Source: Oopsacas minuta (Eukaryota; Animalia; Porifera). Taken from it: 64,000 nt of DNA. A model generated the notes under the pieces. The model was not told where the DNA came from, did not search any database, and saw only the letters and a program-made list of their open reading frames with translations. Every line of letters begins with the position of its first letter. Positions within the stretch are counted from its first letter, which is position 1. Positions 1 through 49,142 of this stretch are shown one piece after another. Made by a program: the position numbers and the translations under genes. The stretch is from contig JAKMXF010000327.1 of assembly GCA_024704765.1 (NCBI GenBank), positions 282,784-346,783 of the forward strand, read 5' to 3'.

Positions 1-3000
1 ATAATGCTTAAGGTAATCTATAGTATTTTCCAGAGAAGAAGACAACTGAAAGAGATCAGACAGTAAAAAGCTTGCTGAAATGTCAGGAATAATTAAGGGT
101 TCGAGTAATATTGTGTGGTCTATTGTGGTTTGAATGATAGTAGTATATTACAAAATAATGTACGAATGGTCTATATATTAACATACATTACAACCCATTC
201 ACATTTTTGGAATTCTTTTTACTAAAGCGACACAATTAAAGCTTAGATTATGTAGTTGTTTGTGGGCAACATTTTACTGCACAGTGTAACTTGAGTATAA
301 TTTGTTCAAAGGAATGTAGATTTTCATTAGTGATAGAAAATCATAGTGGTATCAAGTCACTATCAACGATTAACTATACGACGAGTAGTACGTATATTCA
401 ATTCATATACTATGATCATTGAATTGTTGGGAATTTCAGTCAAATCATACACAGGTATAATATAACCTAAAGCCCACCATATACGATGCATTTTTGTTGC
501 ATAAAACAGTTGCAATCAATCAAGTTGCATGGTGTATTGTGGGATTAACAATGCACGTATTTCCTATGGATATTCCCTTAGCCAATCCGAAAAATATATT
601 GGGAATCAGTGCTGGAAGCCAATTTGCACAAACTACATTATAACCACACTGACATTAGCAAAGAATGTGTAAATTATGAGCAAAATATGTTAACTTGAAA
701 CATGGGCGAGGGATGGCGCTGGCAAACAAGGGCATAGATCCATAAATTATGGGACGAATTGTAAAACTTGTGATTTGGTACGAAAATGATCGCAAAATCC
801 GTACATCATCGCAAATTGTTCAAAAGTGGGGGTACACTTCCTCCTCCGTCCCCCCGGGAATTACGCCCATGGTAGCATGTACGCCACTTTGTATCCGGAA
901 ACTTACTGTATAACTGTAATGGTGACTGTGAGGCTAGTAACAAACCTCTAGAATCATTAAGTAAAGAAGCCGCATATACAGCTATACTAAACAACTAATA
1001 TGTATCACCAACAGAGTAAATTTGGCGATACTGAGAGTCTTTATCATTCATCTTAGTTCAAGATGTGTTTTTTTAAACAACAAATGAATCCTAGTTAAGA
1101 TATCTTTGAAATGTACTTGATGAATATTTGGCAACATTCATAGTGCATAACACCTATTGTTAGGATAGCTGGATGTGGGCCAAGTGGTATTTTTTGGCTA
1201 GATGAGGCCAAGACCTACCGTTTTCCTTTTTAAAGCTAAGCGATGCGAATTATAGTTTTCGAGATATACGGTGTGACCAGGTTTTCGCCCCTTTGGGAAC
1301 CAGGCCACACCAGGTTTAAATTGACCGTTCTTAATAGCAATAACTACAAATTACGCAAACTAATAAATTCATAAAAGAATCAATCAACTGACGCAAGGGT
1401 TGATAACCGCAAGATTGATTATGTGTGCATTCCTATGGTATTTGTATAGAATTCATCAACATCATTTCAGTATAGTGGCTAATACAATTTTCTCCATAGG
1501 ATTTGGCTTATTTAGGAGATTTTTCGTAACTTCGTCAGTTTCCATCCGATTTTTGAGTTCGAAAGCTCGATCAGCTTCTCTCAACGAGTTCTTCAACGGT
1601 GCATATAGCGATTTTTGACTACATTAAAAAAGTTGGGGGTGTCGGATTCTATAGTTGTACGGCAAATTAAAAATGGTCAGGGAAAATTGAAAAGTGGTCA
1701 AACCTGTCCAGAGTTTTACAAGCAAAAGTAAAGGTGAAGGCAATTACCTAACCTAGCGTTATATATATATGTACATTATACTAATTTCACAACCGAGAGA
1801 AGTTGAGTAGCAACAAATAATTGTAAAAACGCTATAAATCAAAGACATGATTGAAATATTGTATGAAAAATATAAATAATAATCAGAATGAATTCGAAAA
1901 ACTAGGAGGCCAAAAGTCTGGTGGGGGGAATATATCCTCCCCTGGATCCGCCACTGAGCAATACAAATTCACCCTTACGATCCGACGATGTCGCAACGAG
2001 GTAGGTTTACGCAGGCTCCATATCTTGTTTTTACAAATTTGCTTTTATAAATGAGAATTTATTTCTTATTTTGGATACTGTAATCGTGTTTACGGGTCAT
2101 GTATTTATGTAATTGTTTCGTAGTTACGCATGGTTTACTTGATGTGCTAAATATAAATAATTATTTTATTGATATTTAAGTTGTTTTAAACTCAACTTTA
2201 TACTTAATTATTCTAAAAACTACTCCTATTGCTTGTGCTTTGAAATCAAATATATCTACTGAATCGAATTCGGATGTTGGTCCACAGTCCATTTGCAGTC
2301 AATCGCCTCAAGATTCATTAGACACAAGGTTGGAAACTTTGGATGTGACCAGTTCTGATGGACATTATTTCAAAGAGCTGATGTCTAAAGACAATAAACG
2401 AAATTTGTTACCTCGGGATTCTGATTATAGAATACATCAAATATTGAAAGCTAGCAAAGGACAAGAACTGTGCTCATTCATACCTTCGCTGCACAGAGGC
2501 TGTCATATACAGAAGAGAGTTATACTCCCTCTAATTTAACGCTACAATTAAAACTTAGAAATGATAAAATTGTTAATCAAGATCTTCGTCAAGTGTTTGG
2601 TAACTATATATTGTTGATCTTCAGTTGATGCAAGCAGTTCTGGAACCTGTTCATCGAAGTTTATGTTCAGATGAGTTATATACTGTAGATCGAAATCTTT
2701 CTGGAATGTGTGGGTAGCTTTTCAGATAAGAAATCTAATCCGGTCGTTAATTCTGGTGATAAACCAAATAGTGGCATGAACTCGACCAGCTTTTCGTACT
2801 ACCTGGTCGTCTTACTGGTACTGGTAACGAGAAAGCGAAAATTTACCATGCAACTCAGGGGATTCCAGCTCCTCCGAATCCATATCAATACACCAAGATT
2901 CAGGATAGCATATAGTGCAGCTGGAAGGCAACACACATGAGTATGACTAAAGCGAAGGAAAATCTTAAGATGAGGATTGGTAAAGATAATGCAACCAATT

Positions 3001-3499
3001 GTGTAAAATTTAACTGTTTCCTATGACGGTGCTTATTCTAAACCAAAGTCGGTGATCGGTAGTAAATATTGTTTCGCTTCTGCAATATCTGCTGAAATAG
3101 GTAAAGTTGTCGCTTGAAAAATGGCTTGCAACAGATATGTCCAATGTAATAACTATAAACTTAAGCCTTCCAGGAATCCTTTGTTTTTAGAGATAGAACA
3201 AGTCAAGTGGGAACCGCATGTTAACCTGCCAAGCAGATTACCCTACATTGCTTCTAACCATCTTGAGTCAAAATTAGCATCTGTTATACTGAAGGAGTCT
3301 CATTCCAAAGGGATGATCTTCCCTGAAGTGAGTAAATACTAATTAGATACGTAAGTATATTCATAATTACTTAATAATTAGTTAATAAAGTAAATAAGTG
3401 ATAAATTTTTAACAAATCTTTAGAAACACGTATTATAGATTACTAGCAGAGACACTAATGATTTCTTTTTGGTTGTAATTTCGAAGTAAATTTTTATAG

Positions 3500-3900
3500 T
3501 TTTAATGACGTCCGCAAGAAATACTATTGACAACCGTCACAAATCCATGTATTACAGGCCCTAATTCCACTTCAACACAATATTCATGAAATTAATTCCT
3601 TGTGACAACTGCTACAATTGAAAGTGTTCATCGACTCTACAGAGCCGGTTAACTCACATTCACAAATTCCACATACTGTTTTACGTATAGTTGTACTTGT
3701 TGGAACATTTGTATCACTCAAAGTTTTAGTGTCACTCTCATATGATGAGCGTCTGAATATTTCTGAGATGAATAGCCTGTTCCACCCTCCGCAACCTTCT
3801 TCATATAGTCCGTGATTAGCATTTCCTCCCAAATACTTTCATCTGATGGTCTAGGACAATTTCATTTGACATGATCCTTTTATCATCACAAAGACGAAAT
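3500..3900 (-). pseudogene. Degenerate ORF ending in a PHD finger (probably TE-associated)
   Basis: Minus-strand frames joined across two frameshifts read VCGIC...FNCSSCHKE-x-FHEYCV...TWICDGCQ, the C4HC3 PHD pattern including the W before the last CxxC. Parent element not identified. Confidence 0.5.
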
Positions 3901-4019
3901 GTTTCACTGGTACGCAAATTGGGCTCAGAATTATGTATAATCCTGATCACATTTAGTATTCGTTTTATATCTGTCGTTATAACGATTGACAGCTAACACG
4001 GTTCCTAGTCCTAGAACAT

Positions 4020-4503
4020 GTAGTGCATGCACCCATCAATGTAAAGGCCGCAAAATCAGCAGGGAAGAGAATGGTAACAGTATTTTGGGATAGGGAAGGA
4101 ATTATACCCCTCGACTGGTTGCCTGAGAAGACCGCCATAATCAGTGATTATTACGTTGACGAATTGAAAGAATTACGTCAAGTTGACAAGTGGTGTATTG
4201 CTGTAACATGACAACGCAAGGCCCCATGTAAGCTCCAAGCAATGGCTGCAATTCATGACTTAGGATTCGAATGCCTCCCTCATCCCCGTATACTCCAGAC
4301 CTGGTTCCCAGCGACTACTGGCTGTTTGGAGGGATGAAGAGACCCCTCGAGGGAAGAGATTTGAGGATTTCAAACGGCTGGAGTACGAAGTACAACAGTG
4401 AGAATAGGGACCCCTAAAGAATACTATACCGCTGGGCTGGTAAAGTTACCAGAACGATGGAAATAATGTATAAAGTTAAACGGGGAATTTATCGAAACAT
4501 TTG
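4020..4503 (+). mobile_element. mariner (DD34D-type) transposase remnant, 5' truncated
   Basis: SAGKRMVTVFWDREGII, HDNARPH, PPYTPDLVPSD(Y)WLF and KLPERWK*CIKLNGEFIE are recognisable across frameshifts and stops. No left TIR seen. Confidence 0.88.
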
Positions 4504-4784
4504 ATAATCAATTATGATAAGTATAGGTTTGCTATATAAATTATGAAAAATGTCTCATTACACTGATATACAAAATTGTAAAACTTTTTGATGATTAAAT
4601 AAAAATAGTTGAAATTGAATAATTTGAAGGGGCTGTTTATGAATGAGTTAAGTATGTATCCACAACAGGTCTAGAATTTATAATTTTATTGTTGGAAGGT
4701 TGCACCAATATGCGATTAAATATATGAAATTAAACATACATTTATGTTTATTACCTATTAAATCATACTAATATTAACTATCAC

Positions 4785-5200
4785 TAGCGCGCTACGCGGA
4801 TTCTAACACTTCGTGTCTGTACTCGGCCTTCGGCCCTCGCTTTGACTATTAGTTTGTGTGGTATTCGGAATCAGCGTACCCGATTACCCCACAATAACCG
4901 TTGAAACCACATTTCTAGGATAATTTTGAAATTTGTTTACTTTTTGTTTACTTTATATTCATATAAACAACTTAAATTTGTATATGACAAATCCATAAGT
5001 GTGATTCGGATTCACATATTCGCTAACCTTTAGTCAAGTTTTATGAAATTTGTATATTTCCTGATTAACACCATAGATATATGGATACAAACATTTTTGT
5101 AAATACGAATTCCACATTCCATTTCAGCTTCCTTAGCAACGGACAAACGGATAGACAGACAAGACAGACAAACAGATAGCAGTGACAATGATAGTATCTC
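4785..5200. repeat. Possible Helentron/DINE-like non-autonomous remnant
   Basis: GACA/GGAC microsatellite (ggacaaacggatagacagacaagacagac, ~5140-5175) and a GC-rich segment ctcggccttcggccctcg near 4825. Termini not established. Confidence 0.25.
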
Positions 5201-5349
5201 CACTGATATCATTGTCATTGCTAATGTTCAATATTTCCAATGGAACTGGTACAGGTAGGTCCTCTGAATTTGGAATGGCCTAATGGCGGACAGCACGTCT
5301 GGGTACGCAATACTGGATTTATTCTTTTTTGTGATACCATCAATTTTCG

Positions 5350-7174
5350 TCATACAGAAATAACAATCCGAAAGATGACACATTGGTTCTCTCCATCTCA
5401 AAACCAGTTGAGTTTTTTAAGAGAAAGCGCGACGAATTAACAGGTTGCCAGAAACAAATGTATGCTTCATCTCACACAAATGTTCCAGCATTAAGAGCTT
5501 CTTACAAGGTATCTTTACGTATTGCAAAGGCAAAAAAAAACATACATAATTGGGGAACAACTTCTGGTTGGTTGCATTAGTAATGTATGCCGAGAAATGT
5601 TGGGAGAATCTGCAGCAAAAACAACTGCGCGGGTTCCACTGTCAAACGACACTGTTGCTAGAAGAGTGATCGATCTTGCTTGCGACATGGAGGAACAGCT
5701 GATCGAACAAATAAAATCAGCCAAATGGTATTCTTTGCAGCTTGATGAATCTACTGACGTAGCAAATTTGGCGATTTTGTTGTTATATGTTCGTTTTGAA
5801 CATTGTGGTGATGTGAAAGAAGAGTATTTATGTTCGATATCATTTCCTACAAATACCACTAGTTCTCAAATTTTTGATGGATTGAATAACTATATCGTTG
5901 ATGAATCAGGATTAGATTGGAAGTTTTGTGTTGGTGTACGCACTGACGGTGCTGCTACAATGACAGGTCGACATTCTGGAGTTGTTGCAAAAATTAAAGA
6001 AGTAGCACCAGATTGCGAGTCAACACACTGTTTTATTCATCGAGAAAATTTAGCAACAAAGAAGATGTCAAAGGAACTCAACGATGTACTATGTCAAGTT
6101 GTCAAAGTTGTCAACCATGTAAAAGCGAACGCTCTGAATTCTCGCTTATTCGCTTCCTTGTGTGATCAGATGGGAGCTGACCATATACAACTGCTCTTGC
6201 ATGCTGAAGTGCGTTTTCTATCCAGAGGAAAAGTGTTATCAAGAGTTTTTGAGCTCCGAAACGAACTAACAACATTTCTGCTTGATAAAAAACGTGAATG
6301 GGCTGAAAAATTTCGAGATGTAAACTGGAATACAAAGCTGGCATATCTGTCTGATATATTCTCAATGCTTAATGAGCTAAACAGATCAATGCAAGGTAGG
6401 ATGGCAACTAATTTTGCAACAGCTAACAAGATTGACGGTTTTAAAAGAAAGTTAGCTGCATGGCAACATCGAGTCTCTCGAGATTGTTACGACATGCTTC
6501 CAAATTTATCGGAAATAATTAATTGTGAAAGTGGACTTGATGCGACTTCTCTAGCGAATATTATCACCGAACATTTGAAATCACTAGCTGAGCGCTTTGA
6601 ATTTTACTTCCCGAAAGAACAAGATCCTAGAGAAGGAAACGGTTGGATCTGTAATTCCATTTTGCAATTGAAGGACGAGTTGAATGTTCATTTAGAAGAC
6701 AAATTATTAGACCTGGCAGGGGATCAAGGATTAAAGAATATTTTTACAGCGAAATAACACTCGCTGAATTCTGGATAAAGGTTAGACCCGAATATCCAGA
6801 ACTTAGTGAGTTGGCCCTGAAAACAATTCTACCCTTTCCATCTACTTACCTTTGTGAGATGGGGTTTTCAACAATGAGCATTATCAAAACAAAGTATAGG
6901 AATTCTCTGGATGTCAGATCTCCACTACGTGTGGCACTTTCATCAATCGAACCGAGGCTAGATAAGCTCGTCAAATCGAAGCAAGCACACAGTTCTCATT
7001 AGTATAATTGATCTTATAATTATATCACAATATACCTCTTACTACTTAACACTGATATAATACGATAATAAAAACAAATCATATTTACTAAAAATGAGAC
7101 CAACAAGCAGGGGTCCGTGGAATTGTAATGGAGAAACTTTGGGGCCGCGACATAAAAAAGTTTGAGAAGCACTA
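5350..7174 (+). mobile_element. hAT transposon, Buster/ZBED5-SCAND3-like, 5' truncated
   Basis: Right TIR gtttgagaagcacta ends at 7174 (reverse complement of CAGTGCTTCTCAAAC with one change). Left end not found. Confidence 0.85.
5383..7002 (+). pseudogene. Buster-type hAT transposase (frameshifted)
   Basis: ALRASYKV...IGEQLL, LQLDESTD, TDGAATMTG, HCFIHRE, EVRFLSRG, and C-terminal FPSTYLCEMGFS. Frameshifts at the A-run near 5530 and near 6755. Confidence 0.92.
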
Positions 7175-34681: not shown

Positions 34682-34774
34682 TGGTATAATTTCGATTACA
34701 AGAATTTGGCGGTTCTATCTATAATATGAGGAAAACTTTAATGAGTAACTAGTAGTTGACGCGGCATTATAATT

Positions 34775-35162
34775 GAATGAAAACCTTAGAATGGTTCAGA
34801 ATTGCATGATGTATGAACGCACATTTGATATTGACTGGCAACTCTGGGTATAGTTCGTCATCAGAATTCCTGTGAAGCGACATTTCAAATGAGTGAAAAA
34901 TCTTTCAAGAGTCCAGCATCACAGTGAATATCTGCTGACAGAAGATACTGAGTAAAAACATTTGCATAGTTCACTATCACAATTCATGTGAAGTGGAATT
35001 TGCAGTGAATATCCTTTGTATAGTTCGGTATCAAGGTGAATATCTTCAAAGAGTTTATATTGAGTTCAAACCTTTGTATAGCTAACTATCACAATTCCTG
35101 TGTGGGAAATTGGAAAGTGACTGAAAACATTTGTATGGTTCTCTACTGCATTATGTTTGAGC
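34775..35162. repeat. ~58-bp satellite, one ~344-bp hexameric higher-order unit
   Basis: The same monomer type (tggttc..ttgcat..tgtatga) starts at 34792 and 35136. Confidence 0.85.
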
Positions 35163-35180
35163 ATATATTTAAAATGAGCA

Positions 35181-35190
35181 GCGCATGCGC
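35181..35190. promoter_or_regulatory. NRF1-type palindrome GCGCATGCGC in the left inverted end
   Basis: Perfect palindrome gcagcgcatgcgctgc, 225 bp upstream of the ATG at 35415. Confidence 0.6.
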
Positions 35191-35414
35191 TGCATTAATA
35201 TATAATTGGAATTTTGGAAAATAGTAGACTCTCAAATTACATCCTATTATAGTGTAATTAAATCCCCAGGTACTAATATTTATTTTTGAGTTTTGTCACT
35301 TATTTCTACTTTCTTTGTTAGCAAAATCCCTAAATATGTTTCTCAATTAACTTTATACTCAACTCAATGAATGTTTCCTCTTGATTTCCCATTCTGTACC
35401 CTTGATTAGCCAAA

Positions 35415-36745
35415 ATGCCAAAGATACCCAAATTAACAAAGACTAATTTAATAATGGTACTAACAGACATATTGGCTGAGTTTCGTTCAGTTACAGGTGA
35501 GTATGCCCGAGCTGTATTTTCATGGCATGGAAAGCTTGACTCTTTGGGTCCAGAAAAATTTCGAACCTATATCACTGGGAATAGCGATGAAATATCAAGA
35601 ACTCTAATGACTACCAAATATCTACAAGTACGTTAGCAACATCAAATCCTGTGCGTGATCACGAAATCCTCAAGCTATTAGATAGGGATATATCTGGTTA
35701 TAATGTACAGGGACTGCGAAGACTTGTTTCTCGATTATAAAGTGTCAACTGGTAAGTCAACGGTGTGAATACATATAATTATATGGGTCACTGAGTATAT
35801 ATCTCTGTATTTTAGGGAAAAGGTATGTTTTGGGAATGATCCTTCTCTCAAACCGCCTTTTTGGCCCGAAAGAGTCCCTTTCGAAATCATAAAAGCGCAT
35901 GTAAGATTCATCTGCGTATGATAATACAGTCATATAAGGATTACTCTATGAAAGCGCGAGTTTCAGTTTACCCTGAATCTCAGAAGTCTCCAAGCTCTTC
36001 TCAAGCATAGCGACATGATATCTACCGTGACCGATCTAGATCTCTTCTTGATTTCGCTGGAGATGTAATACACCAAGAATCTGATATAGATACTAGTGAT
36101 GATTCCTTCGATGAGCTTTTTCAGCAACCCGTTATCGCTTCGAACACACCTAATTCAGATCCTCAAACACCTCCCCAACATCCAGTCTGGTGACATTACT
36201 CGGAGTTAAGCAACTGGATCCTATTCAAATAATCACTCCTCCTTTTAGTTTAAATGAGAAAAACTTGTCAATTTCAGAATTGTCAAGTCGTAATACCTTT
36301 CTAACAGGCACCACCGTTAATGCATTCTGTGTAAGTTTATCATACATTGAAATTCAATCCGTTTTGTTAGGAATGTTCTCATACCATACATGTATTTGTA
36401 GACATTACTGAAGAAGAATTTTCCTCATTTACAGGGACTTCAGGATACTATTCTCTCCGAAGTGAGTTTCTCAGTTAAAATTTTTGAATTGTAAATCAAT
36501 ATTTGATATTCAATTAATGCTTAGAATCGTCAATTCGCCAAAGCTTCTCATCCTAGTATACAGCTGCATCACGATGGCGCACTTCTCTGCGTTTGCTCCA
36601 GTATTGATGTTGAAGGGCATGTAACTTTATATGATTCGCTATCTACTGGGAGTATATCTGGTGAATTACCTGTCCAATTGGCCTTTATATGTGGGAATAA
36701 TGCTGATCATGAGCTGAAAGTCGCCCTTGCTCCTATTCAGCAATC
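35415..36745 (+). pseudogene. NRF1/EWG-like DNA-binding domain fused to a Ulp1(C48)-like protease; spliced, degenerate
   Basis: Exons read LTDILAEFRSVTGEYARAVF...NVQGLRRLVSRL-x-KVSTG|EKVCFGNDPSLKPPFWPERVPF...FTLNLRSLQALLKHSD, paralleling NRF1 LRAFIPEMLKYSTGRGKPGWG..KPIWWPEDIPW...WTQALRTI..CYKQHG. Then FLTGTTVNAFC|TLLKKNFPHLQGLQDTILSE|..IQLHHDGALLCVCSS..VTLYDSL..APIQQ. GT-AG introns; truncated before the catalytic Cys. Confidence 0.75.
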
Positions 36746-36829
36746 TTATATGTAGACCAAATATTTAGTGAAATTCCTTTATAATTGCAAAGACTTGTTT
36801 TCAACGGCTAAATACGTAGGATAACCCAC

Positions 36830-37072
36830 CATACTAAATTATAATTGCAACCTAGCGAATGGTTCATTGATGATAAATATATACCTTTGGAATCTTTGAA
36901 TTCATTACAATCATTTTCTAAATAGAAACTATTCCAACCTTCTCTAGTTTAACCTTCTCCTCTTCATTGAATTTGAAACTATGGTCACATAATTCCTTTT
37001 CAGGATACATATTTAAAGGTAATTGATGCCATGGCAGAGCTGGTAGTTGTAATTTGCTATTTGGCTTTCATC
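36830..37072 (-). pseudogene. KDZ-like transposase fragment 3 (CxC4-like region)
   Basis: LPALPWHQLP...LCDHSFKF...EGWNSFYLE...IYLSSMNHSLGCNY. Ends where it meets the convergent gene. Confidence 0.45.
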
Positions 37073-37074
37073 TA

Positions 37075-38416
37075 CAGGGTGTAACAAAAGTGTTGTCCCC
37101 TTTCTTTTTTGTCATTGATTGAGTATATAAAAACTGAACCTTGACTATTGCATTTGACTTACCCTTTTCTAGCTAATACCATAATAGTTTTTGACTATTT
37201 CTATCGCAGTTTGATCAATATTATTTTTACCTCTTTCTTTTTACTTGGATTTCGTAAAATATTTTTCCCTGTTCGGAATGGATGTCCGCGACCACGGGTT
37301 AGAGGTTCGTTCTCAAGCAGTAGGTATGTTGAGGAGTGGTCTTTCACAGCAAAACGTAGCTCTCGAACTAGACATTTCAGTGAGATCTGTCAAGAGGTGG
37401 TGGAGTGTGTATAAAAAAAGGAATGAGCCTGAAAACCAAGACCCGTTCTGGCAGACCGCCGATTTTGGATCGGGTCAATACAATCATTATCTCCAGAACT
37501 TTGACTAAAAGAAGGCAATCAACTCGCAAGATCGCAAAGAGATTGTATTCAAGTAACGACCCTGTCTCTCACATGACAGTTTATCGCTATTTGACCAATT
37601 CAATTGGTGCATCAGCTTTCAAAGGGCAAAAGACCCCGTCTATCGGTCAAAACATCCAGGACAGACTGAATTTTGCCAAGAAACATCAAAATTGGGGCGT
37701 GGAAGATTGGAAAAAGTTCTTTGGTCTGATGAGTCTCCCTTTGGACTGTATGCAACACTCAATCGGCATAATGATCGTGTTTGGGCTGAAACAACTAAAG
37801 ATGTTCCTCGCTTTTTGTCGGTGAAATTTCCTCAAAAAATTCATGTCTGGGGACTTATGTCGCATCAAGCACTATCTGAGCTCCATATAATTCCACAAGG
37901 ACATACTGCAAACTCGCTATATTACAGGGATGAAATATTAGTCAAGACTTGTAGAGGTGCCATCAACCATGCAGAAATATGGGACTTATTTCAGAGCGGC
38001 CAATGTTGGGAAACATGTCCGATTTCATCTTTATGCAAGATGATGCTCCTGCCCACACGACCAAAATGACTCAGAAGTGGTGCTGAGATAGTCTAAACGG
38101 GTTTTGGGAGAAAGGTGACTGGCCAGGGAATTCACGCGACCTGAACCCAATTGAAAACCTTGGGCTATATTGAAAGAGAGAGTTAATGAGAAGGGTCAGA
38201 TGACAAATCGAAATCAGTTAATTGAAACCGTGAAAATTAGCATGGCAAGCCATTACTCCGATAATTTGGAAACTTTAGTAGCCAGCCTGCCAAACAGAGT
38301 AAAGTTGTTTTGGAAATGGGAGGTGATTATATACACAAATGAAAGTTGACATTGTGTAGTTATTTCTCATAGATGCTTCTGGCAATCGAAGGGGACAACA
38401 CTTTTGTTACACCCTG
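37075..38416 (+). mobile_element. DD37E (TRT/ITmD37E) Tc1-like element
   Basis: TIR CAGGGTGTAACAAAAGTGTTGTCCCC with TA TSD. WSDESPF and QDDAPAH...DLNPIE with 37 spacing; degenerate. Confidence 0.94.
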
Positions 38417-38418
38417 TA

Positions 38419-38683
38419 GATTGAATAGTATTGCTCTTGTTGATATCGCGTTATATTCAAACTTTTCTGTTATTTGATCCAGTTTTTTCGAGAATATTAT
38501 GGAGTCTAGAATGTTGTTTGCACTTTGAAGAACAAGAACAACATAGCCACCTATCATTATTTAATTGGAAGTTGTGAAAAGTATTATCTGTCAACAGAAA
38601 TATGTCGTTAGGACTTGGGAAATAATATATTATGTCTTCTACAATGCTTGCTTCACAAACTCGCAAACAATCATTTTTGAACA
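38419..38683 (-). pseudogene. KDZ-like transposase fragment 2 (SWIM-like Cys/His cluster)
   Basis: CEASIVEDIIYYFP...RWLCCSCSSKCKQHSRLH, lying between the DD37E and MULE insertions. Confidence 0.45.
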
Positions 38684-40048
38684 GAGTTCCAAGGAAGTCC
38701 GACAAAACGTTCCACGACAAAATGTTCCACGACAAAATGTTCCAGACAAAATGTTCCAGCGACAAAATGTTCCACGACAAAACGTTCCACGACATTTCGC
38801 TCCACTTTTGATTGGTCAATGTTTGTTAATAATTTAACAGGTTTTAAATGGCTAAATAATTGAACTAATTTCTTGTCTGAATTCGTTTGGCTAATTCTAT
38901 CTTAAGTAAAATTGGTTTACCAGTTGCTGTGTAGAATTTGCTAAAAAGATTAACTAAGTAGCTCATATAGATTCATTTAGATTGTGGTCGAAAATAGACA
39001 TAGTATATTATTAGAGGATGACATATATAATATTATGTAGTAGGTATTACAAACTGGTATAGCGTCAAGAGCAGTTGGCTAGATATTATTGCATTTGTTT
39101 CAAACAATTTTAGCGTCCTGGCGGATTCAGTGGGTGCTAAAACCTGTTTTTCGGAGCCCGCTTATTTGTCCCGGTTGAATTCCAAATTTCCAATAGACAT
39201 TAACACTATTTTATTTCAGAATTACAGACACCCCATAATTCCGACTTCCAGCCATTTATTAGTACCAAATTATATTGATAACCCCGAAATTATGGCCATT
39301 TACCTGAATCCAAGGGTGACCGTAATTCAGATGTTCCACTGTATATATATATGTGTGTGTGTGTTCATTTGAAATTACTTTCTTGTTGACACCTTTGGAC
39401 TTTGGAGGGGTTAAGACCAGATTTGGCATGTATACTCGCAATGAGATCTAGATGTGTACGGTTATCGAAGTGCTGTGCAGCACGCCCTGTGTTGGTTTTG
39501 CCCCTTTGACTAAAAGCATTGTTTATTGATTATATATGTATACCGCCCACCGGCACCACATACGATGCAACCAAGCTGCGTATTGTAATGTCTGCTTTAT
39601 TTATGTTCGAAATATTTTATATAAACGAGCGAGTTTCGCTTGCGGTTTACGATCACGCTATTAGGGGAAACCAGGCCTGACTAAACCAATGTAGAGATGG
39701 CCAATTAGAAATGTTTTAAGTTCATATTTCATTGCTTTTGTCGAGATTACTGAACCAAAGCTCTTATAAATCCTAGTTACCCAGTTTAAATATGACTACT
39801 TGTATTATTAATAAGTAACTTACAAGAAATATAATTGATTAATTAAACATTTATCTAATAACAATAGGAAACTAAACAAAACAAATAGAAACTAAAAACT
39901 AAACTATGCTCTACTTGGGTGCAGCTACCACATCTCGACCACTGTCCACTTCAATTGGTAGCTGCACCGTCAGGAATTAGTGAAATGCGGAGAGAGGTAG
40001 AAGAGAGGAGATTTAACACATTGGCATGAAGAGAGAGGGAAAGAGAGA

Positions 40049-41333
40049 GCAAGGGTTCATACGAAAGGAATGGAGATAGTGAAGCGTACGAATGAGCATC
40101 TGCATGCACCTGATGTGCAGGCTATGGCCTGCTGTGAGATAAAGGCCGGCATCAAGAGGAAAGCACGAGACACACAGGATAGCTCACACCAGATAATCGG
40201 TGAGGGTATGCTAACAGCATCAGAGGGTACTGCCGCTAAACTACCTAAGCTGGACAGCCTGAAGCGGACGATACAGCGTCAGCGTGCAAGTGTATTATCA
40301 GCTCCAGTGCAGCCAACCGCCCTATCAGAGTTGGTTCTACCTGCAGAATACCAGCGGACAGCCAAGGAGGAACAGTTCCTACTCTATGACTCTGGGGAAG
40401 ACGATGCACATAGATTCCTCATCTTCGGGACACAACGCAACCTCGGGATGCTACAGCAAAACAAGATCTGGCTAGCTGATGGCACCTTCAAGACGGCGCC
40501 CGCCCTCTTCGCCCAGGTGTATGTGGTGCATGGACTCCGAGGAGGAGACGATCCTATGAAGACTGGTCATCTGTTGCCGAGTCTGTTCGTGCTGCTGCCC
40601 AAAAAACAGAGGATACCTACCGTAGGATGTGGGAGCAGATCGCATACTCTGTCCCCTCGCCCAGCCTGAACAGATGCTCCTGGACTTTGAGAAGGGCGCA
40701 ATTAACAGCTTTGAGCATGTCTGGCCTAACACAGTGGTTAAGTGCTGCTTCTTCCACCTCACACAGAATATCTGGCGCCATGTGCAGTCTGTAGGGCTGC
40801 AGTCTGACTACACACATGACGAAGAGCTGGCCATGCGCATCCGGAAGATACCAGCCCTTGCATTCGCCCGACCAGCAGACGTACCCGATCTGTTTGAGCA
40901 AGTGTCAATGGACTTCCCCCTTACGTCTGAGATAGGCGAGCTAGTCGACTACTTTGAGAGGACGTATATCGGTCGCACGCTAGCCACTGGACACCATGTA
41001 GCGGCGACGTTCTCCATTGGCCTGTGGAACTACCACTTCAGCACGCCCTTCGGACTCCCCCGTACAACCAACGCCGTAGAGGCATGGCACCGCAGCTTCA
41101 ATGCCACTATCGGCTGCCATCACCCCACCATATGGAAGTTCCTCCTAGCCCTCAAGCGTGAGCAGGGCCTAGTGGAGGTGCGGCAGACTAACTACCTTGC
41201 TGGGAAGCCGCCAACCAAGCGGAGGAGGTCCCAACAGAGTGAACAAGCGTTGAGGACTCCAGTTGGAGAATATTATTCACCAGACCATACTAAGACGAAG
41301 TTCCATACAAGTGTAGACACCATCTCAGCCTGA
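40049..41333 (+). pseudogene. MULE transposase, 5'-truncated inverted copy
   Basis: Highly similar to the reverse complement of 43723-45021. WLADGTFK, LLDFEKG, CFFHLTQ and TTNAVEAWH present; frameshift near 40605. Confidence 0.93.
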
Positions 41334-41401
41334 GAACGGATGTTAATCTTCCGTATTATCTATACCTCAAATAAATTTGATTTTGAGATAATACTTTAGA
41401 T

Positions 41402-43707
41402 CAGGGGTCTTCAACCTGCGGCTCGCGATGATAAAGCGTGCGGCTCGCGGGATAATTCTTGTTTTTGTTTATTTTGTCTTCACTTTGTTAATTTTGAAAT
41501 TTGTTGTATTTTATTCAACAGATATTGTGAATATACTTAAATATTAGCACTTTTTTGTTTCCCAATTCTGGAAACCTTGATGGTGTTTAAAGTGTATAGA
41601 AGACCTTTGTTGTCTTCAGTAATTAATTTAAGTCTTCAGTCAATATTCAAATACAAATACAAGTATAAATCAGAAGTATTTGACAATATACAATTTCATT
41701 TTCGGATTTCAAATACTCTCCAAATACACATTTTTTATTATTCATTAATTATTTACGTATCCACTATGGCTACTTCTACGTCGAAAAAGCGGAAGATACA
41801 AGAAGAAAATCGGTCATTCAAGATAGAATGGGAAATAAAGTATTTTTTCGTGGAGGACAGTGGCAAGTTCATTTGTCTAATATGCCGTGAAACAATAGCT
41901 TTCGCTAAAAAAGGAAACTTTGAAAGGCATTACAATACCAAACACCAATCAAATTTTGTGGGAATTCTTGGGGAATCACGAAAGACTAAACTAGACAATC
42001 TTAAAAGAAACTTGAAGAGTGAACAATCAATCTTTTCAAAAAATGATAATTCGGTTAAGTCTATCACAGCAGTTAGCTTTGCTATCAGTAATATAATCGC
42101 GAAACGTATGAAACCATTTACGGATGGTGAATTTATAAAGGAATGTCTAAATGAATTCGCTGATCAATGTTGTCCAGACAAAAAACAACTAATACAGCAG
42201 GTATCCTTGAGCGCTACGACAGTAATGCGTCGAGTGGAATCAATTTCAAAAACTATTCATACACAACTATTGGAAAAGACAAGTTGTTTTAGTTTCTGTA
42301 GCTTGGCACTTGATGGAAGTAAAGATATTTGTGATGTTGAACAATTGGCAATCTGGATAAGAGGCGTTGATGAAAACTTCAACATTACCGAGGAATTACT
42401 GTCTCTGCGTTCTATGCATGGAAGAACTCGTGGCATTGATATTTTCGAAGAGTTTCTTAAGATTGTGTCGGAAAACAACATTCCTGCCTTAAAGTTATCT
42501 GGCATTTCAACAGATGGAGCTCCATCAATGCTTAGTACAGGCACAGGATTTAAAGGTCAAGTTCTACGATGGTTGACAGAAAATAATGTGACAGAAATAT
42601 CATGGTGTCACTGTATTATTCATCAAGAGGCCCTATGTGCGAAAACACTTGGACTGGAAAATGTTATGAAGTTGATAGTAGACGTTGTAAATTTTATCAG
42701 ATCTAAAGGAGTGAATCATAGAGAATTTAAAGAATTTTTGAAAGATCTCGATTCAGATTACGGAGATGTATTATATTTTATAAGTGTTAGGTGGCTGAGT
42801 AGAGGAGTAGTTCTTAAAAGAGTTTGGGAATTACGAGATGAAATATCAAGTTTCTTAGCCTCAAAGGGCAAGAAAGTTACTGAATTCGAAGATACAAATT
42901 GGATTAGCGACTTTGCCTTCCTTGTAGATATGACTACACACCTAAATATTCTAAATTCCACACTTCAGGGAAAGAACAAGTTGATTCATGAACTTTATGC
43001 CACAATTCGAAGTTTTGAGATGAACTCGCTCTATTTAAGTTACAGCTTAAAAATAACAATTTTTCTCACTTTCCAGCACTAAAGTCACAAGATAGCCGAT
43101 GGAAACAAATATGCTGAAATTATTTCAAATCTCCAAGAAAACTTTGATACTCGATTTGGAGATTTTAGAAATCAACAACAAAGCTTCGAGATTTTTGCAC
43201 AGCCTTTCAGTTTTGATCCACAATATGCTCCACAGGAGCTTCAACTTGAACTCATAGACCTGCAGTCTAGCATAGATCTCAAGGCAGACTTCAAGGATGT
43301 TGGAGTAATTAGTTTCTATAAAACTCTTCCTTCAGATATCTATCCTGCTATTTTAAAACACGCAAGAAGGATAGCTAGTTTATTTGGAAGCACTTACACT
43401 TGCGAGGCATTTTTCTCTAAAATGAAATATATCAAGAATAAATATAGAACTAATTTGACTGATGACCACCTCCAAGACGTTCTTCGTATTTCATCGACTG
43501 ATATGAAACCTAATATAGATGGCATCTTAATACAACAACAAAAACAGTACCAACCTTCACATTAATATTTTACTCTGATAAATTACTCATAATAATACAG
43601 TACTATATTAAAATATAGAATACATAATCCTTAACTTTTAATGCGGCTCGCCAATCTAATACGAAACTAATATTTGGCTCATAGAAGAAAAAGGTTGAAG
43701 ACCCCTG
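41402..43707 (+). mobile_element. Buster-family hAT (GTF2IRD2-like) nested in the MULE
   Basis: TIR CAGGGGTCTTCAACC. Perfect 8-bp TSD CTTTAGAT (41394-41401, 43708-43715). Confidence 0.97.
41766..43565 (+). pseudogene. hAT transposase with a single frameshift near 43025
   Basis: MATSTSKKRKIQEENRSF, CLIC..HYNTKH, LDGSKD, STDGAPSM, HCIIHQE and VRWLSRG. The C-terminal GSTYTCEAFFS is in the shifted frame. Confidence 0.94.
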
Positions 43708-43722
43708 CTTTAGATTAACATG

Positions 43723-45165
43723 TTAATCCGCTCCCAGACCGAAATGATGTGCTAAACCTTGCAAGAACTCCATCTTAGTATGATTTAGTGAATAATATTC
43801 TCCAACTAGAGTCCTCAACGCTTGTTCACTCTGTTGGGACCTCCTCCGCTTGGTTGGCGGCTTCCCAGCAAGGTAGTTAGTCTGCCGCACCTCCACTAGG
43901 CCCTGCTCACGCTTGAGGGCTAGGAGGAACTTCCATGTGGTGGGGTGATGGCAGCCGACAGTGGCATTAAAGCTGCGGTGCCATGCCTCTACGGCGTTGG
44001 TTGTATGGGGGAGTCCGAAGGGCGTGCTGAAGTGGTAGTTCCACAGGTCAATGGGGAACGTCGCCGCTACATGGTATCCACTGGCTAGCGTGCGACCGAT
44101 ATACGTCCTCTCAAAGTAGTCGACTAGCTCGCCTATCTCAGACGTAAGGGGGAGGTCCATTGACACTTGCTCAAACAGATCGGGTACGTCTGCTGGTCGG
44201 GCGAATGCAAGGGCTGGTATCTTCCGGATGCGCATGGCCAGCTCTTCGTCATGTGTGTAGTCAGACTGCAGCCCTACAGACTGCACATGGCGCCAGATAT
44301 TCTGTGTGAGGTGGAAGAAGCAGCACTTCACCACTGTGTTAGGCCACACATGCTCAAAGCTGTTAATCGCGCCCTTCTCAAAGTCCAGGAGCATCTGTTC
44401 AGGCTGGGCAAGAGGACAGAGTATGCGGATCTGCTCCCACATCCTACGGTAGGTATCCTCTGTCTTGTTGGGCAGTAGCACGAACAGACTCGGCAACAGA
44501 TGACCAGTCTTCATAGGATCGTCTCCACCGCGGAGTCCATGCACCACATACACCTGGGCGAAAAGGGCGGGCGCCGTCTTGAAGGTGCCATCAGCTAGCC
44601 AGATCTTGCTTTGCTGTAGCATCCCGAGGTTGCGTTGTGTCCCGAAGATGAGGAATCTATGTGCATCGTCTTCCCCAGAGTCATAGAGTAGGAACTGTTC
44701 CCCCTTGGCTATCCGCTGGTATTCTGCAGGTAGAACCAACTCTGATAGGGCGGTTGGCTGCACTGGAGCTGATAATACACTTGCACGCTGACGCTGTATC
44801 GTCCGCTTCAGGCTGTCCAGCTTAGGTAGTTTAGCGGCAGTACCCTCTGATGCTGTTAGCATACCCTCACCGATTATCTGGTGTGAGCTATCCTGTGTGT
44901 CACGTGCTTTCCTCTTGATGCCGGCCTTTATCTCACAGCAGGCCATAGCCTGCACATCAGGTGCATGTAGATGCTCATTCGTACGCTTCACTATCTCCAT
45001 TCCTTTCGTATGAACCCTTGCTTTACACTCTCCTCTCTGCTCGCACTGCTAATATGTCATTTCTCCAACTCTCCTATGCATCAAATATACGTATCCTCCT
45101 TTTAACATCTTTTCTCCTCCCTTGTTCGTTCTGACCAGCCTGAAGGAGGGCTGATCATGATCCAT
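43723..45165 (-). pseudogene. Full-length FLYWCH-MULE transposase with one nonsense codon
   Basis: MDHDQPSFRLVRTNKGG..GGYVY..RRVGEMTY*QCE..CKARVHT..HLH (FLYWCH; the Trp codon is TAG), followed by a 425-aa open MULE core. Confidence 0.93.
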
Positions 45166-45736
45166 TGATAAAATGAAGGTGTTAATTGAAAGAATATAAA
45201 AATGTAGCAAATAATATTTAGCTGATGATGCAAGCTGAAATTAATACAATTGCAACATTTAAATAGAACTACAAAGGTGACTCCATGTTTACTGGCAAAC
45301 ACACAATTAATTTCGCATCTTCTCCATCAAAGGAATTAATTTCGCATCTTCTCCATCAAAAGAATTAATTACTACGTATGCATTCCTGATATAAATTCAT
45401 CACCTTTACTATAAATCATCTTACCTCACTCTGCTAACACAGAACTTCTATGTTTAGGTTTGCGATATCAAAACTGTAACATTACATTCTTCTGAAATCA
45501 TTCATCCCAAATTAATTGATTATATTTGTAATATTATTTAGCCATTTAAAACCTGTTAAATTATTAACAAAAATTGACCAATCAAAAGTGGAGCGAAATG
45601 TCGTGGAACGTTTTGTCTGGAACATTTTGTCGCTGGAACATTTTGTCTGGAACATTTTGTCGTGGAACATTTTGTCGTGGAACGTTTTGTCGGTATCCGG
45701 AGTTCCAATGCTTGATAATGAGAACAAGTATCACTA

Positions 45737-47078
45737 CAGGGTGTAACAAAAGTCTTGGCCGGTTGCATTATGGTGGTTCACATAAAATATTTCAAGGTCA
45801 CAATATCTAATTATTTACCAATATAATCACCACCTCTTTCTAAAACTAATTTCATTCGATTAGGCATCCCATTCATCAGGTTTCGAAGTAAGTTCGGTGA
45901 AATCGTCTTCCATGCCGTTTTTAGGTTTGCAATTAGGGCCTGAATCGTGGTGACCTGGCCCATTTCATCCAACCGTTCATATAAAATACCCCAAAGATTT
46001 TCAATCGGATTCAAGTCGGGGGAGCTAGCTGGCCACTCCCCTTTCTTCCAAACCGAGGGAACTTCTCTGAACACCACTGCTGCGTGACATTGGCCGTATG
46101 TGCGGGGGCACCATCCTGCATGAACAGAAATTCTGACATGTTTTCCAACATCGACCTCTCAATAACGGACCCCTTTTTAGCTTTACGAGCGATCGCATCC
46201 AGACAGGTTTTCTTCAATATTTCGTTCCTATAGTAGGCTCCATTGACGGTCTGTTTTGGGGTACAATGTGCAGTTCTGACAGCGCTCTGTGTGACATCAT
46301 TCCCCAGACCATAATTTTCGCTGGGAATTTGACCTGAAAAATAGGCTCAATATTTTGTGAACCAATTGCCCATACTCGATCATTCTGTCTGTTTGGCGAA
46401 TGAAATAACTCAAAGGGTGATTCATCAGACCAGAACACCTTATTCCAATCTTCGAAAGACCAATTCTCATGATCCCGAGCGAATTTCAATCGATTTTCCT
46501 TGATTTTTTGTGTAATTTTGGCCATTTGGGACGTTTATAGGGTCTGGCATCAAGCCTTTGTGCTAAGTGCCGCTGAATTGTCATGTGAGATATGGGGTTC
46601 CTTTGATAGATAGTCTCCTCGACAATTTTCGGGTTGATTGCCTCCTTTTCCCCAAGGATTTCTTAATCACAATTCGTGATTCCCGTTTCAAAATTTGAGG
46701 CTGTCCAGATCGAGGTTTAGTCTCCATAGTCTCACCGCATTTGTGTTGACTCCACCATCTCCGTACTGATCTTACTCCAACACTTAGACGTGTAGCTACC
46801 TCTTTTTGAGTAATGTCTCCTTCAAGCATCCCAATTGCTTTAGAACGGAGCTCAACTCCGTGATCACCGACATTCATTTTCCCGAAAAAAACTGGTAAGG
46901 TAAATATGTTAAAAACATTCGAGAGCAGTGTTGAAGATATTCAATATGCCTATAGTATAAATGTAGTTACTATATAGTAACTATCAGTCAACTAGCATTT
47001 CCGTTGTATGCTATAATTACTAGTATATATTAAATCCATTTACGATTGAGAACCGGCCAAGACTTTTGTTACACCCTG
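45737..47078 (-). mobile_element. DD37E (TRT/ITmD37E) Tc1-like element
   Basis: TIR CAGGGTGTAACAAAAGTCTTGGCCGG with TA TSD. WSDESPF and QDGAPAH...DLNPIE with 37 spacing after one frameshift correction. Confidence 0.95.
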
Positions 47079-47079
47079 T

Positions 47080-47748
47080 ATAACAATTGGTGGATAGATT
47101 GCTGTTTGTTTCAATTATGATTCTCCTTTTGTTTAGTACAATGGTTCCTTGAAATACATAATTTTAGTTTTGGTAGTGAGAATAGTAAATGTATTGTAAA
47201 CTCCGATTAATAGGGTCACTTGGGACCAGGCCCATTTGACCCGATTAACCAAAATAAAGGTGTTGGGCCCTACGAACAGGAGCAGAAAGACAAACATGCA
47301 AACAGACAACAATAATAGTGATAATAACGTAAATTTACCTTGTGAGTGATCATAATCTGCAATTATAACATATTCACTATCCTCTAACTTATATATGTGA
47401 GAATTCAGTATCAATAGTTTTACATACTGGTCAATTATAGACATTTTTACTTGTTTCATTTCTGGTTCTGAGAAGCAATCAGGTTGACATTGACCTATCC
47501 GAAAAATTATACTGAATCAACTAACAACTAAAGTTTGGTTGAAAGCATAAGGAATTAGGAATATAATTATCACCTGGTTTTGACCATGTTGGTATATCTG
47601 ATTCTATTAATTTAAATGATTCACCTTCTGATAGGCATACTTTGTCGATGTCTAATGTGATGAAGCTGATATCTTCTTTCTCCGAGTTTTTTCGTTTTTT
47701 TGGGTATATATTATCAGATCCAGTTTGTGAAGCTACTTTTTCAGCCAT
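47080..47748 (-). pseudogene. KDZ-like transposase fragment 1 (5' exons)
   Basis: ATG at 47748. EYVIIADYDHSQG|PNTFILVNRV across a 69-nt GT-AG intron. Resembles the DYD..G..F-V N-terminus I recall for HMGXB3/KDZ-type proteins. Confidence 0.45.
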
Positions 47749-47970
47749 TTCAAAATGAAATTATCTAACGAATGGTATAAATTTATATATCTACTTCTAA
47801 CACATTATACATGTACCAGCATCCCAATGACCACTTTTAGTAGTGTAGTCTCGAAACTTATCTAATCACATTCAATTCAGCAGTTTGGTAACTATGGTTG
47901 AAATGATAAGGCGTATCTATAAAATTACTTACCAATAATCTTAATGTAGAGCATGTGCTACTGAAATGCA

Positions 47971-47980
47971 ACGCATGCGC
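47971..47980. promoter_or_regulatory. Near-perfect NRF1-type palindrome ACGCATGCGC in the right inverted end
   Basis: 9/10 match to GCGCATGCGC, 223 bp upstream of the minus-strand ATG at 47748. Confidence 0.5.
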
Positions 47981-48000
47981 TACTCACTTTTAAATACCTC

Positions 48001-49142
48001 GCATGAGCGCATAATTGAAATTGAATAACAACTCGTGGATTGTTCGGTATCAGAATTCCTATGAAGCAACATTTCAAATCAGTGAAAAATCTTTCTATTG
48101 GTTGAGCAGTACAATGAATATCTGCAAATAGTTGATTTTCTGTTCAAACATTGTATAGCAAAATATCATAATTCCTGTGCTTAGAAATTGGAAATTGACT
48201 GACATCTCTGTGTATCATCGAGTATCAGAATTCCTGTGATGCGACATTTCAAATCAGCGAAGAATTTGTGAATAGTTCAGTATCACATTGAATATCTGCT
48301 TGCAGTATATATTGATTGCAAATCATTGTATAGTTCACTATCACAATTCATCTGTTTCGGCATTAGAATTGAATGAAAACCTTTGTATGGTACAGTATTG
48401 CATTATGTATATGCGCATTTTTCATTGACTGAGAACTCTGTGGATAATTCGGTGTCAGAATTCCTGTGAAGCGACAATTGAAATTGAGTGAATATCGTTT
48501 GTATAATTCAGCATTGCGTGTATATCTGCAAAGAGGTGATTGTGAGATAAAATTTTTGCATAGCTGAGTATCAGAATTTCTATGATGCGAGATTGGAAAT
48601 TGACTGAAAAACATTGTATGGTTCAAGACTGCATTATGTATGAACACACATTTGAAATTGACTGATAACTCCTTGGATAGCTCAGATCAGAATTCCTTTG
48701 AGGCGACATTTGAATTGTGTCAATATCCTTTGCATAGTTCAGTATTACATGGAATCTCTGCATAGAGTTGATATTGAGTGCAAACATTTGTATAGGTCAC
48801 TATTACAATTCCTGTGCTGCGAAATAAATAATTTACTGACAACTCTATGTATAGTCGAGTATCAGAAATCCTGTAAAGCGACATTTCAAATCAGTGAAGA
48901 ATCTATGTATAGTTCAGTATTACATTGAATATCTGCTTACAGTTGTTATTGATTGAAAACTCTTGCATAGTTCACTTCCACAATCAGTTGGGGTGGATTT
49001 TGAATTGAATGAATTTCCCTTGAATGGTTCTGTATTGCGGTGAATAGGCGCGCACATTTGAAATTGAATGACAACTCTGTGCATAGTTCGGTTTCAGAAT
49101 TCCTGTAAAGCGACATTTGAATTTTAGTGAAAAATCTTTGTA
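48001..49142. repeat. ~58-bp satellite array segment
   Basis: About 20 diverged monomers of several subtypes, same polarity as 34775-35162. Confidence 0.9.

Follow-up and report, generated by a model that had tools for sequence, protein, structure and literature searches.

The stretch analysed here (the window) comprises 64,000 nucleotides of AT-rich eukaryotic DNA from the glass sponge Oopsacas minuta (assembly GCA_024704765.1, contig JAKMXF010000327.1), and the feature under study occupies window positions 35163-48000, surrounded by a 58/116/232-bp satellite. With good confidence, we assign this feature to a ~5.35-kb family of two-gene cut-and-paste DNA transposons of the KDZ (Kyakuja-Dileera-Zisupton) type in O. 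minuta, of which it is a dead, non-autonomous copy, and in which the second gene product (the partner) probably binds the transposon's own ends. The copy inserted into the satellite with an 8-bp duplication; at a later time a central 2.2 kb was deleted, and two mariners and a MULE landed in the copy. The 12.8 kb were thus accounted for as four nested transposons within a satellite, and the two apparent "spliced genes" of the window were dropped as host-gene candidates.

An intact copy of 5,354 bp, located elsewhere in the O. minuta genome and fetched via annotated proteins (L003:7747-13100), served as the reference. In a BLASTN comparison, the window matched it in five collinear blocks with 92.6-94.6% identity: reference positions 5-1588 correspond to 35166-36742, 3793-4127 to 36741-37074, 4126-4404 to 38417-38692, 4396-4432 to 45700-45736, and 4431-5351 to 47079-47997. 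The overlaps between blocks are target duplications. Because the flanking blocks overlap by 2 bp (TA), the segments 37075-38416 and 45737-47078 were read as insertions, both of mariners; a 9-bp overlap (GAGTTCCAA) marks the MULE at 38693-45699. Three nested insertions with duplications had already been proposed by an earlier reading of the window from its letters (the sequence-only reading), and the block overlaps showed their coordinates to be exact. Their excision in silico left 3,147 bp, in agreement with the ~3.1 kb predicted.

Between the first two blocks, 2,204 bp of the reference (1589-3792) are lost at a junction at 36741/36742, with a 2-bp microhomology (CA). This deletion removed the C-terminus of the Ulp1 protease domain, the PHD finger, both 3' gene ends and the whole KDZ catalytic core. 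Contigs of other copies, assembled from the reads of four public runs of one sample (run kind not specified), diverged into the deleted sequence at exactly the two junction positions. The deletion proposed previously is therefore real, its position being slightly to the left of the range 36745-36830 first given.

Full copies were recovered elsewhere in the genome (L003, L004 and L006; 94.7% identity for L004 and 98.1% for L006). They share both ends and both genes, and 8-bp duplications were found, which bore out the view that the window feature derives by deletion from a KDZ-type element with two genes. Intact family copies consist of two convergent genes between ~32-bp inverted ends. At least nine annotated O. 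minuta proteins on eight contigs belong to the family, and the close relatives all came from assembly GCA_024704765.1. Read contigs of other copies had many times the depth of the flanks.

The boundaries of the element were set at 35163 and 48000 because L004, L005 and L006 keep the same termini beside unrelated flanks. Its start (ATA+TATTTAAAA...) and finish (...TAAATA+CCTC) lie exactly at these positions, and contigs from the public runs span the 35162/35163 junction. The left terminal inverted repeat (ATA+TATTTAAAATGAGCAGCGCATGCGCTGCATT, 35163-35196, plus strand) and the right one (two 23-bp units, 47946-48000, minus strand, with the terminus ...TAAATA+CCTC) belong to ends of ~32 bp that the window shares with L001, L003, L004, L005 and L006, again with unrelated flanks. 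On re-alignment of the left end (TATTTAAAA-TGAGCAGCGCATGCGCTGCATT) with the reverse-complemented right end, 29 of 31 positions were identical, with one gap (inner 31-32 nt), the same figure as in the sequence-only reading. At their outermost bases the two ends are non-complementary, yet these bases are conserved in distant families: one end reads (C)ATAT..., the other GAGGT... (ends of L003, L004, L006, L007, L008 and L009, and window positions 35163-35165 and 47997-48000).

The target-site duplication lies inside a satellite monomer, with its left copy at 35155-35162 (GTTTGAGC) and its right copy at 48001-48008 (GCATGAGC); beyond the latter, the satellite continues in register. The two copies are identical at 6/8 positions. 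Those of L004 (AATCTCTC/AATCTCTA) and L006 (ATACAATG/ATACAATA) agree at 7/8, as do those of L008 and of an element nested in L006, and those of L007 and L009 at 8/8; the boundaries of the duplications are uncertain by 1 nt. A duplication directly abutting TATTTAAAA was considered and rejected, as it would match at 0/8 positions in the window, and L004 and L006 put three to four extra bases (ATA / CCTC) inside the element. An empty site rebuilt from the left flank, one copy of the duplication and the right flank aligned without a gap at the joint to satellite positions 48525-48761 and 34771-34935. The element therefore entered the satellite as an ordinary insertion with an 8-bp duplication, which agrees with the split monomer, resuming in register with a degenerate 8-bp overlap, that had been noticed from the letters. 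The first 13 element bases (35163-35175, ATATATTTAAAAT) resemble the satellite expected in that register (ACACATTTGAAAT, e.g. 48646-48658) at 10/13 positions, a likeness that may be accidental or may point to a preferred target.

The minus-strand gene of intact copies encodes a KDZ DDE transposase that bears a cysteine cluster in its N-terminal region. The KDZ transposase domain PF18758 was found in the annotated models P0051 and P0055 and in the L006 genes, where two consecutive exons match consecutive parts of the profile (76-135, 20.7 bits; 145-202, 21.1 bits). The N-terminal cysteine clusters are visible by eye (CANCYSDTCSHYQAFELCSQNDCLQVC; WLCCSCSSKCKQH); no Pfam CxC model matched them. 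The window copy lacks PF18758, as the corresponding region (reference 1589-3792) is deleted. The KDZ-like assignment made earlier thus holds for the family, and not for the window, whose core lay wholly within the lost 2.2 kb. L006 also holds a second O. minuta family, here called B as opposed to A, the family of the window. The B element (~6.4 kb, with GCGCATGTCC end repeats and its own partner and KDZ genes) lies inside an A copy (L006:1272-13134), inserted at position ~76 of that copy with its own 8-bp duplication (TCTCAAAT/GCTCAAAT).

The plus-strand gene encodes the partner, which, judged from profile matches and conserved motifs, is predicted to be a three-domain protein with an NRF1-type DNA-binding core, an Ulp1 (C48) protease and a PHD finger. 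The intact partner P0025 (485 residues) matched the Pfam families Nrf1_DNA-bind, Peptidase_C48 and PHD, all near the thresholds. The cut-off of the NRF1 profile PF10491 (23.5 bits) was passed by P0026 (25.4 bits) and P0027 (24.4 bits), with matches limited to profile positions 132-181 of 213. When P0025:1-170 was compared with the PDB by phmmer, human NRF1 came first (8k3d_A, E 2.3e-5; 8k4l_A, E 6.6e-5), residues 99-144 aligning with NRF1 ~203-247. In human NRF1, R206 reads the inner TG, and N242 and R244 the outer CGC, of the half-site TGCGC (PMC10810270). The partner has R, N and K at the equivalent positions, that is, two identical residues and one conservative replacement. For the protease, L003:9150-9716 scored 20.9 bits with PF02902 (cut-off 20.7), and P0025 contains the catalytic His-Asp-Gln-Cys set HW...YDSL...QQQRGGADCG. 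The same L003 segment scored 23.1 bits with the PHD profile PF00628 (cut-off 24), and a C4HC3-like pattern is visible. The fusion of an NRF1-like domain with Ulp1 proposed earlier was upheld in that family members pass the PF10491 and C48 thresholds; the protein has three predicted domains, not two.

Three other proteins initially listed as relatives (P0005, P0014 and P0021) are repeat proteins (TPR, FN3), and their matches were taken as spurious. A relative with 77-79% identity (L002:7741-10600; ENA ERZ25071281, ctg49043) keeps the left end and the NRF1-like part. Beyond ...NTFLTGTTINAFC it continues into an open reading frame of 435 residues, in which an OTU cysteine protease (PF02338, E 1.4e-8) takes the position of Ulp1; a 182-bp satellite comes next. 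L002 may represent a protease-domain swap or a chimera.

The ends carry the site expected for such a core. The 10-mer GCGCATGCGC is the palindrome bound by NRF1 (structures 8K3D and 8K4L; PMC10810270). In all O. minuta loci its exact form is confined to element ends, with one to three copies per end inside 23-bp repeats (TGAGTAGCGCATGCGCTGCATTT). The left end of the window copy has one exact palindrome (35181-35190), and the right end has ACGCATGCGC at 47971-47980 (one mismatch) and GAGCATGTGC at 47949-47958 (two mismatches). Elsewhere in the 64-kb window GCGCATGCGC did not occur, with 0.23 hits expected when one mismatch is allowed.

Distant relatives, with 29-54% identity, were found via the first exon of the partner in ENA assemblies with megabase contigs and traced to their loci. 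In six families (O. minuta A and B, L007, L008, L009 and L011) the ends consist of 22-24-bp repeats around a 10-bp CATG-centred palindrome, of which the inner CATG is constant and the outer bases vary. The arginine equivalent to NRF1 R206 is constant wherever the first exon is legible. The residues equivalent to NRF1 242/244, read from the second exon, change with the palindrome: N..K accompanies GCGCATGCGC (O. minuta A, L009 and L011; human NRF1 has N..R), K..S accompanies GCGCATGTCC (O. minuta B), S..R accompanies GATCATGATC (L007), and N..Y accompanies ACACATGTG[C/T] (L008, repeat version ACACATGTGC). Since the outer palindrome bases change along with the very residues that read those bases in NRF1, each partner likely reads its own end repeats. 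This co-variation argues against host NRF1 as the reader of the ends and is compatible with either docking or promoter regulation. It also provides a small natural series for NRF1-type reading of the three outer half-site bases (GCGC, GATC, ACAC, GTCC).

Among these families, L008 shows the convergent arrangement of two genes again, with exons for Ulp1, PHD and KDZ, and L007 is another internal-deletion derivative. The orientation of the genes relative to the ends varies, A, L007 and L008 differing from B and L009. One end of L009 (17246-17623) has ~18 tandem 22-bp repeats with GCGCATGCGC, as against two to three at the other. L010 (P0016) was left out of the comparison, as neither inverted ends nor a palindrome turned up in its 18 kb of surrounding sequence.

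Several observations weigh against binding of the ends by an NRF1-type partner, and against the assignment of the window copy to such a family. P0025 (21.6 bits) and P0030 (16.1 bits) stay below the PF10491 cut-off, and the NRF1 likeness spans ~46-50 residues of the DNA-binding domain, near the Pfam threshold. A profile of 17 N-terminal exons, searched against the PDB for the NRF1 dimerisation domain (residues 54-172), matched no NRF1 chain. An AlphaFold2 model of P0025:1-165 (17-row alignment) reached a predicted local distance difference test (pLDDT) score of 55 and a predicted template modelling score of 0.42, too poor for a fold test. The 12 exon-like pieces of the window itself gave no relevant Pfam match. 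The co-variation draws on a small sample, six related families without phylogenetic independence; some of its residues were read from decayed exons, and the alignment of the B element in L006 is uncertain. The palindromes, at ~225-235 bp upstream of the genes, could be promoter elements rather than docking sites of the transposase.

As the window pieces have no Pfam match, all domain evidence was taken from intact relatives; the profile searches supported the NRF1, Ulp1 and KDZ assignments there, and no window piece reached any of these families. A Foldseek search of the PDB with the low-confidence model (pLDDT 55) returned nothing at E <= 0.001, with 8k4l_B in 14th place (E 1.6), and an ESM Atlas search with the first exon gave chance matches alone.

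In the mechanism we propose, in which our confidence is moderate (it is high for the anatomy), the partner would bind the end repeats, probably as a dimer across the palindrome. Once bound, it could mark the ends for the transposase and/or control both promoters, which lie on the outer sides, much as the Myb-like partner does in PIF/Harbinger. Its protease and PHD parts might then act on chromatin or on SUMO-modified proteins at the ends. The palindromes lie upstream of both start codons, at distances of ~234 bp (35181 to 35415) and ~223 bp (47971 to 47748), and NRF1 is a promoter-proximal activator (PMC10810270). This leaves some room, in our view a minor share, for the palindromes being mainly promoter elements by which the partner or host NRF1 switches the genes. 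The transposase would then find the ends otherwise, for example through its cysteine-cluster domain, and a role in recognising DNA or chromatin has been suggested for the CxC domains of KDZ elements (PMC12062965). However, the repeats sit within ~15 bp of the termini in numbers of 1-18 per end, which is typical of arrays bound by transposase complexes. The palindromes of L007, L008 and O. minuta B are not GCGCATGCGC, so that host NRF1 would be unusable there, and it is the residues of their own partners that change instead. The promoter and docking roles are not mutually exclusive.

Capture of host gene fragments is common in transposable elements, and the OTU segment that stands in place of the protease in L002 shows the partner gene to be modular. 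The partner might on these grounds be a passenger, a captured host fragment without a role in transposition, and the end palindromes coincidental or simple GC-rich repeats. We consider this very improbable, because families with 35-41% identity, from at least four assemblies, share the convergent two-gene layout, the exon boundary behind ...STGK and the architecture of the ends, the palindrome co-varies with the DNA-reading residues, and GCGCATGCGC occurs nowhere else in the 64 kb. That the window feature is not one element, and consists of two unrelated gene fragments between chance-similar short inverted sequences in the satellite, might be suggested by the lack of a Pfam match for either gene in the window alone and by the satellite-like first 13 bases of the left end, but it is refuted by the collinearity with three full-length copies on other contigs, with unrelated flanks and their own 8-bp duplications, and deserves practically no credence.

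An Ulp1-type protease has reportedly been associated with Zisupton. The O. minuta family shares PF18758, 8-bp duplications, terminal inverted repeats and, judged by eye, the N-terminal cysteine cluster with the Zisupton/KDZ superfamily (Bohne et al. 2012; Iyer et al. 2014; Kojima 2025, PMC12730594), in which Zisupton and Dileera have 8-bp target duplications (PMC12730594). It differs in that its protease is encoded apart from the transposase, by the second, convergent gene, where it is joined to an NRF1-type core and a predicted PHD finger, and in that its ends are arrays of CATG-centred palindromes matching the partner domain. With the two-gene PIF/Harbinger (and Nuwa) transposons, which have a Myb/SANT-like partner and whose two-protein layout is mentioned in PMC12730594, it shares the logic of a DDE transposase and a separate, sequence-specific DNA-binding partner thought to bring the transposase to subterminal repeats. 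In contrast to PIF/Harbinger, its transposase is of the unrelated KDZ superfamily, its partner has an NRF1-type instead of a Myb fold and also bears protease and predicted PHD domains, and its duplication is 8 bp instead of 3 bp.

Common to the partner and NRF1/EWG/P3A2 (8K3D, 8K4L; PMC10810270) are ~46 DNA-binding residues including ...STGxG...W...KPxWWPExxPW/F..N.., with R206 and N242 identical and R244 replaced by Lys, and the element ends carry the NRF1 consensus GCGCATGCGC. Unlike NRF1, the partner is encoded by a multi-copy transposon, is fused to Ulp1 and a predicted PHD finger and has no detectable likeness to the NRF1 dimerisation or activation domain, and its sister families have other half-sites (GATC, ACAC, GTCC). 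In a full-text literature search, no paper turned up that describes a transposon with an NRF1-type partner, in line with the earlier remark that this domain was not known as transposon cargo. The family idea, an NRF1-type partner with matching ends, is therefore apparently unpublished; the window copy is an ordinary decayed member.

More tentatively, KDZ transposons of sponges, and perhaps of other animals, may encode NRF1-type proteins whose half-site specificity has been repeatedly re-tuned together with the end palindromes, with an origin possibly shared with NRF1/EWG; at present we regard this as possible but rather doubtful. If true, these domains and their sites would form a "lock-and-key" series made by nature, and a direct common origin of animal NRF1/EWG and the transposon protein, one derived from the other, would be possible. 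The pairing of an NRF1-type core with a matching end palindrome makes the role of the protease-bearing accessory proteins of Zisupton/KDZ elements directly testable and bears on the source of the animal NRF1/EWG domain.

In the window copy, both genes are pseudogenes, and judging from their lesions it makes none of the family proteins; at most it could be mobilised in trans. The partner pseudogene (35415-36742, plus strand), delimited by tblastn of P0025 and by DNA alignment to L003, retains the NRF1-like core, the linker and the N-terminal part of Ulp1. Relative to L003 it has frameshifts from 1-2-bp deletions at 35612, 35731, 35738, 35827 and 35889 and a stop at 36008-36010 (TCG>TAG). Read contigs from other copies have an extra A behind 35612. 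In Ulp1, LC has replaced the catalytic His motif HW, and the sequence stops with ...APIQQ, so that the catalytic Cys, which would come next, is absent; the PHD finger is missing through the deletion.

Of the transposase gene, only approximately the first 330 codons are kept, split up by the nested insertions and with frameshifts at five or more places. Its minus-strand pieces are the 5' part at 47079-47748 (exons 1 and 2, both still open, and the start of exon 3, with the start codon at ~47748), a 37-bp sliver between the MULE and the second mariner (45700-45736), the piece with the cysteine cluster WLCCSCSSKCKQH (38417-38692; frameshifts at 38462, 38470 and 38677), and the last kept piece of the N-terminal region (...LPLNMYPEKE...SSMNHSLG, 36743-37074; frameshifts at 36926 and 37020). 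A 127-residue piece of this gene matched one database protein, from Oopsacas minuta.

The sequence-only reading had described two spliced, convergent genes. The convergent layout stands and true introns exist, for example after ...STGK and at 36331-36401; both genes are pseudogenes, and part of the apparent splicing is frameshifting, as the L003 alignment shows 1-2-bp deletions at several of the supposed introns. A contig of run X4 joins 36330 to 36402 (GT..AG), that is, with the partner intron spliced out, pointing to transcription of family members or to a processed copy.

The nested elements were classified by Pfam as Tc1/mariner (HTH_Tnp_Tc3_2, 37.9 bits) and MULE (PF10551, 42 bits). The mariner at 37075-38416 has 33-nt perfect inverted ends and a TA duplication, and public-run contigs skip 37073-38416, representing the empty, mariner-free site in other copies. 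The second mariner (45737-47078) has 30-nt perfect inverted ends and likewise a TA duplication. The 7-kb MULE (38693-45699), with its 9-bp duplication GAGTTCCAA, has subterminal 15-bp repeats and perfect 76-nt terminal inverted repeats. Its transposase region is present as an internal inverted duplication (40032-41303 and 43765-45038, 97%), and inside the arms lies an open reading frame (41577-43082, 501 residues) that encodes a zinc finger of the Spin-doc type (PF18658, 29.3 bits).

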